Notes under the pieces: generated by a model | Seen by the model: only the letters and a program-made list of their open reading frames with translations | Databases searched by the model: none | What the model was told of the DNA's origin: nothing | Translations under genes and position numbers: made by a program | Part shown: piece after piece, positions 10,001 to 13,000 of the stretch | Layout of the letters: the number at the start of each line of letters is the position of its first letter | Numbering within the stretch: the first letter of the stretch is position 1 | Assembly: GCA_950097015.1 (NCBI GenBank) | Contig: CATNEN010000025.1 | Coordinates: 4,836,001-4,900,000, forward strand | DNA from: Macrostomum hystrix | Lineage: Eukaryota > Animalia > Platyhelminthes | Length of the DNA stretch: 64,000 nucleotides | Direction: 5' to 3'

Positions 10001-13000
10001 CTCTCTCACTCATTCTCTCACTCTCTCACCCACTCTCTCGCTCTCTCACCCATTCTCTCACTCTCTCACTCATTCTCTCACTTTCTCACTCATTCTCTCA
10101 CTCTCTCACTCATTCTCTCACTCTCTCACTCATTCTCTCACTTTCTCACTCATTCTCTCACTCTCTCACTCATTCTCTCACTCTCTCACTCATTCTCTCA
10201 CTTTCTCACTCATTCTCTCACTCTCTCACTCATTCTCTCACTCTCTCACTCATTCTCTCACTCTTCACTCTCTCACTCATTCTCTCACTCTCTCACTCAT
10301 TCTCTCACTCATTTTCTAACTCTAAAGGCCAGTGAAAGAGCAAAATGCGTCTGGAGTTGCCTTGGTTCGAATCCTGATTTCAATTTTTTCTATACATATC
10401 GGAATCGATTCCAACATTAGATTTTTGAAATTCAATGGGCAGTGTCCTCTCTCCTCTCTCCCACTCTCTCTCTCCCTCTCTCCCTCTCTCTCTCCCTCTC
10501 TCCCTCTCTCCCTCTCTCTCTCCCTCTCTCCCTCTCTCTCAGGCCAGCACCGGCGTCTCGTACGACCGAGTCAGTGCCACGGAGTTGAGTGAGTGTGGAT
10601 TGAGTTGCGGGGCGCTGCCGAATCGATTACGATATGTTGAGATTGAAAGCTGGATTTGAACAAGCGCCTATAGCCTAATGGCTAAAGCGCTAGGCTAGAC
10701 TCTACTGATGAGCTCCAAAAAGAGCGAAACGCGTCTGGAGTTGCCTTGGTTCGAATCCTGATTTCAATTTTTTCGATACATATCGGAATCGATTCAAAAT
10801 TAGATTTTTGAAATTCAATGGGCAGTGTCCTCTCTCCTCTCTCCCGCTCTCTCTCTCCCTCTCTCCCTCTCTCACTCATTTTCTCACTCTCTCACTCATT
10901 CTCTCACTCTCTCACTCATTCTCTCACTCTCTCACTCACTCTCTCACTCTCTCACTCACTCTCTCACTCTCACTCATTCTCTCACTCTCTCACTCATTCT
11001 CTCACTCTCTCACTCATTCTCTCACTCTCTCACTCACTCTCTCTCACCCCTTCACTCTCTCATTCGCTAATTAATCGTTCACTAATTCAACATAGGGGGA
11101 ATTCTCGAATATGCAAACATTCCGAGCTCCAGATTTAATATCGAGGTGCTCGATAGAGATGATCCAGGTGACCATTCGAAGATGAGAAGTGCTGATTGCT
11201 CACTAAAGATCCCGTTAGGACATGAGAAAAAGTCAATTTGATTTTTACCCATCCCTCAACCCTCATATGTGCCACACATACAAGAGTTGTTTAACGGACT
11301 GAAGCACAACAAGACTAGGGGGTGGAACGATCATGAGCACACGAATTGAGGTCAAGATGAGGAACAAAAGCACTGCCTCTGACACACAAAGAGCCTCTCT
11401 GCACAGATGAGGAACTAGAAGATGCTGAGGATTCACAAATTCACTCTAATCCTACTGTCATAGTACTCCCGCCTATTTCTACTGAGGAATACGGGTCATT
11501 TGAGGTCTATTAAAATAATATCCCAGATTTTTTTTAGAAATCTAATCAAAGGAAAAATGGAAAACTGATTCTGTGCAATTCCTTTACACTATTCTACAGG
11601 CTGTGTACAACTGTTCTGTCCATGGACAGTTTTTAAAGTTGTATGAAATAACGTCTTACTTAAGAACAAAATCAGTTCCCTTAGGCCTGTGATTCGAACT
11701 CCCGACTTCGTGTTTGGAAGCGATGCATACAATAATTAATAATAATAATAATAATAATTGATTACACCTGCCCCAATTGGGCCAGATGTGCAGCCGACAG
11801 CACAGCCGCAGCTATTGCTCGGCGAATCTGTAGGCTGCGTACGGCTGTTCAGTCCGTGGACTGGGGGGACGCCACACCCACCCTCAATTACCCCAGCTGA
11901 TGCTGGTACACATTTAACAGCTGGGTGAACTGAAGCAACGCACAGTTAAGTGTTTTGCCTAAGACCAAAAATTGTTCCAGTGGAGTCGGAAATCGAACCC
12001 CCGACCTTCAAGTCGTGAGGCCGACGCTCTAGCCAAAACGCTTCAACCTCCTCATACTACTTCATTTGTATTGCATAGAAACAATAAGCTTTAAAGTAGC
12101 CTAGATACAAACCATATGTAAAATCCCCATTATATTATTTTTATCCCACTGAGGTCATTTGATTAAGTTATGGGATGGAGTCACTTGGTTTCTAAGGAAG
12201 AGCTGTGCGACGAGTGAATCATGACTATTGTGTGACAGTTCGGGTTTCTCGGCCATCCATCGAGATTGAGCTAAGCGGATGCTAAGCATGGCCATGTCGG
12301 AGCACTCTCATTAGCCAATTGTGTGCGCCCATCTATTCATATTCGGGATCATGGGGATTTTTGGGATAATTGAGAATTTCTCCTGCTTAGAGTGACTTCT
12401 GGCTTGTCTAACAGGAGCAGTCATAATTTTTCCTTCTGTACACATGACCCCTCCTTCTTCATCTGTGCTGGGATCAGCAAGAATCTCATCATTCAAGCAT
12501 TTATTGCGCAATCCGACTATGCGACTCATTTTCTAGACTGGCACAATGGGACCGGCTTTGGCTTGTCGGTGAGCTGATAATCCTGTGCGAATGCATGCGC
12601 ATGCTCAAGCAGCTTGAGCACACTGATCAAAGCCTGATTATTATGCTCTGAGCACCTACGTGTTAGCTAGCTAGCTAGATAGATAGATAGATAGATAGAT
12701 AGATAGATAGATAGATAGATAGATAGATAGATAGATAGATAGATAGATAGATAGATAGATAGATAGATAGATAGATAGATAGATAGATATATCTGCGCCC
12801 CTATCCCCAGGAGGAAAATAGGGTGGGTGAGTTGAAAATTAGGATTAAGTGAAGTTGTGAGAGCTGTGACCCAGATGCCAGAATTGAGTTCATTTGTCGG
12901 CACGGAATCGCATTAGTTTAAATTTTCTCACCTCATTAAAATTCAGCTGTAATTTGAATTGCACTTGTTTAATAAAAATTTATTGGATCAACTTACTTTC

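Follow-up and report, generated by a model that had tools for sequence, protein, structure and literature searches.

A young dispersed repeat of Macrostomum hystrix carrying a hammerhead motif between RNA polymerase III-type boxes

We analysed a stretch of 64,000 nucleotides (nt) from the flatworm Macrostomum hystrix (assembly GCA_950097015.1, contig CATNEN010000025.1, positions 4,836,001 to 4,900,000; the whole stretch is called the window below), in which a sequence-only reading had described a hammerhead ribozyme combined with a tRNA-like RNA polymerase III (Pol III) unit at 10664-10773. The motif belongs to a repeat unit of about 290 nt, which together with part of a second unit forms an insertion of 1.4 units at 10335-10846. 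This insertion splits a single satellite array with a period of 20 nt. The features of the locus, in order of position, are as follows.

10000-10323, no strand assigned: left part of the CT-rich satellite with a 20-nt period (Tandem Repeats Finder)
10335-10447, plus strand: upstream partial unit, equal to unit positions 10719-10830, with its B box (10364-10374) and T6 run kept
10446-10540, plus strand: CT-rich linker between the units, about 95 nt here and 36-50 nt in most tandem copies
10540-10830, plus strand: repeat unit of about 290 nt, with 94-100% identity along its entire length to 29 other loci
10620-10663, plus strand: left arm of an inverted repeat, long and imperfect, paired with 10749-10797 in the minimum-free-energy fold and closing the rod
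10664-10691, plus strand: tRNA-like 5' half, with a GCGC/GCGC stem and a D-arm-like hairpin (AGCC-UAAU-GGCU)
10671-10681, plus strand: A box TAGCCTAATGG, a full match to TRGCNNANNGG
10692-10746, plus strand: type I hammerhead with extended helix I (core 10699-10741, helix III 10729-10734)
10748-10758, plus strand: B box GGTTCGAATCC, matching at 11 of 11 positions, within a poorly paired T-stem
10749-10797, plus strand: right arm of the inverted repeat, including the B box
10768-10773, plus strand: T6 run resembling a Pol III terminator, inside the mobilised unit
10831-10846, plus strand: beginning of the CT-rich 3' tail, with conservation among copies over roughly its first 30 nt
10847-11043, no strand assigned: right part of the satellite, with the same consensus unit as the left part (Tandem Repeats Finder)

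Hammerhead motif, boxes and predicted fold

All conserved core positions of a type I hammerhead were present between 10705 and 10735 (CUGANGA, GAAA, UH, G10.1-C11.1 and A15.1-U16.1), and the 31-nt core pattern was expected 0.00 times in the shuffled window. The plus-strand CUGAUGA at 10705-10711 is followed by a helix II of 4 base pairs (bp), GCUC/GAGC (10712-10715 with 10722-10725, loop CAAAAA), by GAAA at 10726-10729 and by the palindrome ACGCGU at 10729-10734. Position C17 is predicted to be C10735, with the cut between C10735 and U10736. The proximal part of helix I consists of seven pairs (10698-10704 with 10736-10742) and continues past an internal loop into a distal helix, AGGC/GCCU (10692-10695 with 10743-10746). 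The complete type I hammerhead at 10699-10741, the extension of stem I beyond an internal loop and the palindromic, dimer-type stem III were thereby confirmed as the sequence-only reading had described them. In Rfam the Hammerhead_HH9 model aligned over its full length at 10687-10758 with 40.1 bits (E 4.6e-9). The comparison with the Hammerhead_1 model, which had been proposed as a check, gave a match at exactly 10699-10741 with 31.4 bits; the match stood, but its score was below the gathering score of 34, as was that of Hammerhead_HH9 (52). The scores are low because helix III of the motif has no loop, and since both lie under the gathering scores a default Rfam scan is silent on the hammerhead.

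Within one molecule helix III would have only 2 bp and no loop, and the 6-bp ACGCGU duplex would be intermolecular. Since helix III is only a 6-nt palindrome, the motif would probably act as a double hammerhead formed by two units or two molecules, in the manner of the newt and axolotl repeats. The cofold prediction for a dimer was a domain-swapped structure and not a double hammerhead, a question that nearest-neighbour energies cannot decide.

The order of A box, hammerhead, B box and T6 run was borne out at 10671-10773. The gap between the A and B boxes measures 66 nt (77 nt from start to start), the T6 run lies 9 nt past the B box, and the succession of A box, B box and T-run is, as read from the letters, that of a putative type 2 Pol III promoter. 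The sequence GGTTCGANTCC had four matches in the window against 0.10 expected. The description of the whole as a tRNA-like unit held in part: both boxes are perfect and the D-arm-like hairpin is there, but no tRNA was called and no cloverleaf could be formed, the 3' acceptor strand being absent and the T-stem poorly paired. ARAGORN detected no tRNA at the hammerhead site, and with default settings it detected none on either strand when the hammerhead was deleted in silico at 324 combinations of borders. The Rfam tRNA model gave nothing on the plus strand up to E 10. A minus-strand tRNA was rejected as a candidate; it appeared only with lowered ARAGORN thresholds and reached 12.8 bits with the Rfam tRNA model (E 8.3), which is chance level. 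A weak minus-strand cloverleaf can be drawn with the reverse-complemented ribozyme as its 'intron', and we take it to be a by-product of the inverted repeat.

In the minimum-free-energy prediction the unit folds as a long branched rod; the inverted repeat closes a junction from which the D-like hairpin and the hammerhead project. Against dinucleotide shuffles, the fold had a z-score of -5.1 in the core, and of -4.8 when the 384-nt stretch from cleavage position to cleavage position was folded as a circle. In register, 98.2% of the paired cells could pair, against 30-47% when the 3' partners were slid.

A young family of dispersed copies

A search of the 220-Mb assembly with a 161-nt query detected at least 126 candidate copies genome-wide, on many contigs, and the 40 that were scored were 96-100% identical. 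The exact pattern CTGATGAGC-N(8-16)-CGAAAC had 80 matches in the genome, 77 of them in the hammerhead family, while a control pattern had one; an 18-mer of the A box and a 20-mer of the B box matched 54 and 65 times, respectively. The repeat is thus a young family of about 100 copies. Sublineages are marked by loop II variants (AAUAAG, AAAAAG and AACAAG), the copy in the window having AAAAAG. No other abundant hammerhead family was found in the genome (10 matches against four in the control).

The 30 loci that were aligned all stop at one and the same 3' base, after which a CT tail begins, and every one of them is set within CT-rich simple repeats. Six are solo copies with 5' ends cut at differing points, from 10547 to 10637. 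Thirteen carry a partial upstream unit, separated by a CT-rich linker of 36-92 nt and beginning variably, from position 10686 down to the final 11 nt of the unit. The period of the repeat is about 335 nt, made up of the unit of about 290 nt and a CU-rich linker of about 40 nt, and measures about 300-336 nt where copies are tandem. At five loci other than that in the window two intact cores stand 300-486 nt apart, and these are possible source loci. Long tandem arrays were not seen among the loci of the repeat. One contig (G000:C38:21523797-21528437) holds five copies of the element with spacings alternating between about 1589 and about 690 nt, a cluster that looks like a higher-order tandem duplication.

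At the locus in the window the hammerhead of the upstream partial unit is dead, as the 5' strand of helix I and CUGAUGA are gone and GAAAC has become AAAAT. Its old cleavage site would follow C10351, and the two cleavage positions of the locus are 384 nt apart. The window copy has one predicted live hammerhead only, and would by itself probably not give rise to unit-length RNA. The unit is non-coding, with no terminal repeat and no notable open reading frame (ORF), and has a GC content of 47.4% (50.3% for the 384-nt stretch including the expanded linker). Terminal inverted repeats, as in a miniature inverted-repeat transposable element, were considered and rejected because the ends of the unit, inspected by eye, are not complementary.

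Both the dispersed, retroelement-like nature of the repeat and the keeping of the core across genomic copies, which the sequence-only reading had anticipated, were found, in the form of at least 126 candidates with a fixed 3' end and variable 5' truncation and of 77 copies with an intact core, though the likeness of the copies is explained by youth. No pair in the alignment of the copies showed covariation, since the copies are too alike and the family too young.

Proposed origin and transcription of the repeat

The fixed 3' end, the simple-repeat tail, the random 5' truncation and the partial tandems together point to target-primed reverse transcription from a template longer than one unit. 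We therefore consider that the 1.4-unit insertion at 10335-10846 probably derives from a young, non-autonomous hammerhead retroelement of the kind of the retrozymes without long terminal repeats (non-LTR retrozymes) or of the Sm-alpha-like short interspersed elements (SINEs). In the mechanism that we propose, loci with partial or full tandems would yield transcripts exceeding one unit, which the type I hammerhead would cut after GUC, probably as a double hammerhead. The resulting RNA of one unit's length would have 5'-OH and 2',3'-cyclic phosphate ends, would fold into the rod and may be circularised by a tRNA ligase (RtcB). A reverse transcriptase supplied in trans would then copy the RNA, priming in CT-rich microsatellites and producing partial tandems and copies that share their 3' end but are truncated at random 5' points.

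The most likely donor of this reverse transcriptase would be a Penelope-like element, because such elements are numerous in the genome: we found at least 126 matches to their reverse transcriptase/endonuclease, in frames that stay open for up to 750 amino acids (aa). Some Penelope-like fragments bear a minimal hammerhead with the same CGAAACGCGUC as the repeat. Partial tandems and an insertion bias towards microsatellites are described for Penelope-like elements (PMC8557442), and retrozymes have been derived from Penelope-like pseudo-LTRs (2026 preprint, bioRxiv 10.64898/2026.07.22.740005). No tail shared with the repeat was found in the Penelope-like loci detected via GIY-YIG or via the reverse transcriptase/endonuclease protein. 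At L055:9080-9125, and likewise at L056, L057, L059, L060 and L061, a minimal hammerhead-like motif with CUGAAGA, a 5-bp helix II and GAAACGCGUC lies about 200 nt past the stop codon of a reverse transcriptase C-terminus joined to GIY-YIG, and is followed by a minisatellite. At G000:C8:2492698-2496918 (L082 and L083) two Penelope-like ORFs of 666 and 750 aa stand head to head and are free of stops in the matched part; no hammerhead core was found in the 3.9 kb examined there.

Several observations weigh against an origin as a hammerhead retroelement. The 14 runs found consist of assembled contigs only, which carry no ends, strand or expression level. Four coded organisms have pieces 95-100% alike, and for two of these the runs were guessed to be RNA. 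One 157-nt contig, whose source run was guessed to be RNA, spans 10617-10773 and so stops at the final T of the T6 run. Genomic copies vary beside its ends (at 10616 in the copy L022 and in the length of the T-run in L026 and L029), so that these ends are breaks in the assembly graph and not RNA ends. No sequence common to the repeat and the Penelope-like copies examined was found. Most loci contain 1 to 1.5 units, unlike the long arrays of retrozymes, and the GC content of 47-50% is at the upper edge of the published retrozyme range. The internal T6 run and a further T5 run would halt Pol III before a full unit was made. The hammerhead pairs of this young family lack covariation. When 65 copies were selected by their B box, 52 retained an intact core at the right offset, roughly the share that neutral decay would leave at a divergence of 2-3%; the likeness of the copies reflects youth and does not demonstrate selection.

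The boxes raise the question of which polymerase would make the RNA. They may serve as a true promoter within the element or as a TFIIIC site, they may give rise to a short helper RNA, or they may be a relic; as read from their sequence, they could be an internal site for Pol III or TFIIIC that the element carries along with it. At type 2 promoters transcription starts 10-20 nt 5' of the A box. The expected Pol III transcript, from its start to the T6 run, would here be about 115 nt long. The mobilised unit begins about 115 nt 5' of that expected start (about 130 nt 5' of the A box) and continues for at least 57 nt 3' of the T6 run, through the further T5. Since the unit overshoots the span from A box to T6, the boxes alone cannot make the transposition template unless termination is leaky. 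This bears directly on the version of the sequence-only reading, a classical tRNA-derived SINE, in which the element's own A and B boxes would drive Pol III and the Pol III transcript would be both the self-cleaving RNA and the intermediate of retrotransposition. Such an origin would account for correctly ordered and oriented perfect boxes with 66 nt between them and a T6 run 9 nt past the B box, and the ordinary tRNA-derived SINEs of the window indicate that the Pol III route operates in this genome. However, the transcript of about 115 nt could not serve as template for so much longer a unit, a Pol III SINE being expected to begin near the transcription start and to have no internal T-run; partial tandems joined by a CT linker are unlike a SINE, the tRNA-like part does not form a cloverleaf, and the B box doubles as an arm of the long inverted repeat. 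We thus consider a classical SINE quite unlikely. The possibility that the boxes act as a working Pol III promoter in every new copy, with the ribozyme at the anticodon-arm position of a tRNA-like scaffold, appears to us unlikely as well, to a lesser degree. Unit-length RNA would then arise by leaky read-through of the T6 run. Alternatively, the Pol III RNA of about 115 nt would be a short helper, which would pair with longer transcripts through the palindromic helix III and aid their cutting.

The boxes could also be an inert relic of the source sequence in a plain retrozyme transcribed by Pol II or by read-through from a neighbouring gene. Published animal retrozymes without a known Pol III promoter (PMC7229834) are in line with this, as are the decayed T-stem, the missing 3' strand of the acceptor and the failure to call a tRNA, and the internal T-runs disfavour productive transcription by Pol III. 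Against it, a B box matching at 11 of 11 positions and a full A box were kept while the other tRNA features decayed, and both the spacing and the placement of the T6 run mimic a tRNA gene, in copies too young to prove selection; on balance we doubt that the boxes are a mere relic. Amplification at the DNA level, as a satellite or through segmental duplication in DNA rich in microsatellites and without passing through RNA, would agree with the constant location of the element in CT-rich simple repeats and with the higher-order-like spacing of the five-copy cluster. It does not fit copies dispersed over at least 25 contigs, a single fixed 3' end with random 5' truncation, or flanks that are unrelated apart from simple repeats, and we regard it as very improbable.

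Comparison with known elements and the wider window

Non-LTR retrozymes are recognised by short tandem repeats of 150-450 bp that each hold a type I hammerhead, by a GC content below 50% and by expression as linear and circular RNA of unit length. Those of animals have units of 170-400 nt, a type I hammerhead and a strongly self-paired predicted RNA, which is circularised by tRNA ligase, and they coexist with Penelope-like elements (PMC7229834). The repeat resembles those described by Cervera and de la Pena (2020, PMC7229834) in its canonical type I hammerhead with an internal loop in helix I, in its period of about 335 nt within the range of 170-400 nt, and in its tandem and partial-tandem copies. 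It is non-coding, has no LTR, primer binding site or polypurine tract, and its predicted RNA is strongly self-paired, with a GC content of 47.4% in the unit. Penelope-like elements with minimal hammerheads are found alongside it, and its short helix III calls for a dimer, as in newt and axolotl. Unlike these retrozymes, the repeat has its hammerhead nested between A and B boxes with a T6 run after them, most of its loci contain 1 to 1.5 units, its copies number only about 100, a CU-rich linker is present, insertion is into CT-rich microsatellites, and it is known from genomic sequence.

A run of 26 nt that begins with CUGAUGA, takes in helix II and ends with GAAAC agrees at every position with the consensus of the Hammerhead_HH9 model (RF02275), with which the repeat also shares the plan of helix I, namely 6 bp, an internal loop and a distal helix. 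In contrast to the conserved intronic hammerheads of amniotes that this model describes, the motif here has a loopless helix III, scores 40.1 against 52 and belongs to a multi-copy repeat. The minimal hammerheads of Penelope-like pseudo-LTRs have the same CGAAACGCGUC, which comprises the palindromic helix III and the cleavage triplet; they differ in having CUGAAGA, another helix II and a poor helix I, and no further similarity was found.

Both the Sm-alpha and the Sj-alpha repeats of Schistosoma are reportedly SINE-like elements. The Sm-alpha sequence X15618 has a B-box-like GGGTTTCGAGTCCCAG at about nt 90-105 and a hammerhead at about nt 125-185 (supplement, PMC8490949; the alignment text was machine-read, and single letters may be wrong), and 2,368 Sm-alpha copies were called as whole tRNA-Gln-TTG by tRNAscan-SE (PMC2770079). 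The sequence-only reading had assigned our repeat to the same type. It was right in that Pol III-type boxes are combined with a hammerhead in a retroelement-like repeat, and the two further agree in their flatworm host, in a unit of about 335 bp, in dispersed and tandem copies, and in joining a tRNA-derived module of Pol III boxes to a type I hammerhead with a short helix III. The layout is different. In Sm-alpha a whole tRNA-like head is followed by the hammerhead, whereas here the hammerhead stands between the A box and the B box, in the place of the anticodon and variable region, and there is no cloverleaf; compared by eye, the two have only the ribozyme core and the boxes in common.

An ordinary tRNA-derived SINE is present in the window at 4303-4530 (plus strand) and 25093-25322 (minus strand), its two copies being 80% alike and having a whole tRNA-like head on which ARAGORN is silent. 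It is alike to the repeat over 17-19 nt in the A- and B-box segments, including GGTTCGAATCC-Y-GATTT. Its A and B boxes begin at the normal distance of 44 nt from each other, against 77 nt in the repeat, it has no ribozyme, and there is no likeness outside the boxes.

Nowhere in the literature that we searched did we find a hammerhead described as lying between an A box and a B box, or any account of hammerhead ribozymes from Macrostomum. The kind of hammerhead repeat is already known, and the nesting of the ribozyme between the boxes looks like a new layout. Among metagenome contigs the same order of motifs had 16 matches, about the chance level given how common tRNA T-arms are, and none was confirmed by Rfam. 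In one group of them (L063:4724-4782 together with L066, L068, L069 and L076, at about 56-114; four come from one sample) CUGAUGAG, a hairpin CCC(C)UUCGCAAGGG and CGAAAC come after a D-arm-like segment, and a B-box-like GGTTCRATTCC stands 20-30 nt past CGAAAC. This group had no Rfam match at E 0.01, and a helix I was not evident. Another metagenome contig (L077:4706-4771, minus strand) matched the type-P1 twister ribozyme with 45.6 bits (E 3.5e-7; gathering score 67.2).

The placement of the motif within an intron of a spectrin-like gene, which had also been suggested, was not supported, as no spectrin-like exon was found around the site and the only related signal lies 48 kb away. The region around 10 kb consists mainly of mini- and microsatellites, and minisatellite arrays dominate the window from 5 to 18 kb; at 13264-17350 long arrays are open in several frames, with short-repeat ORFs of, for example, 595 and 568 aa. 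Neither Pfam nor the ESM Atlas gave a match for the minus-strand ORF at 5615-6382. Three genes or exons were identified elsewhere in the window.

45432-45878, plus strand: BTG-family gene (Pfam), between the repeat and the GAS2/GAR exon
56929-57089, plus strand: gene for the U12 minor-spliceosomal small nuclear RNA (85.7 bits, E 2.7e-15, above the gathering score)
58477-59253, minus strand: exon with a GAS2/GAR domain (Pfam), which we take to be possibly the tail of a spectraplakin-type gene

The transcription of animal retrozymes is unsettled, and the only well-known pairing of Pol III boxes with a hammerhead is that of Sm-alpha, in which the modules lie side by side. A working promoter in the M. 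hystrix repeat, if true, would be a natural counterpart of the engineered cassettes that express ribozymes from tRNA promoters, and the first defined promoter of an animal retrozyme. If the boxes work, each insertion would carry both a start signal and a processing device within about 110 nt; if they are inert, the repeat would be a further retrozyme family in a phylum already known for such elements. The involvement of Pol III is directly testable in a laboratory flatworm.

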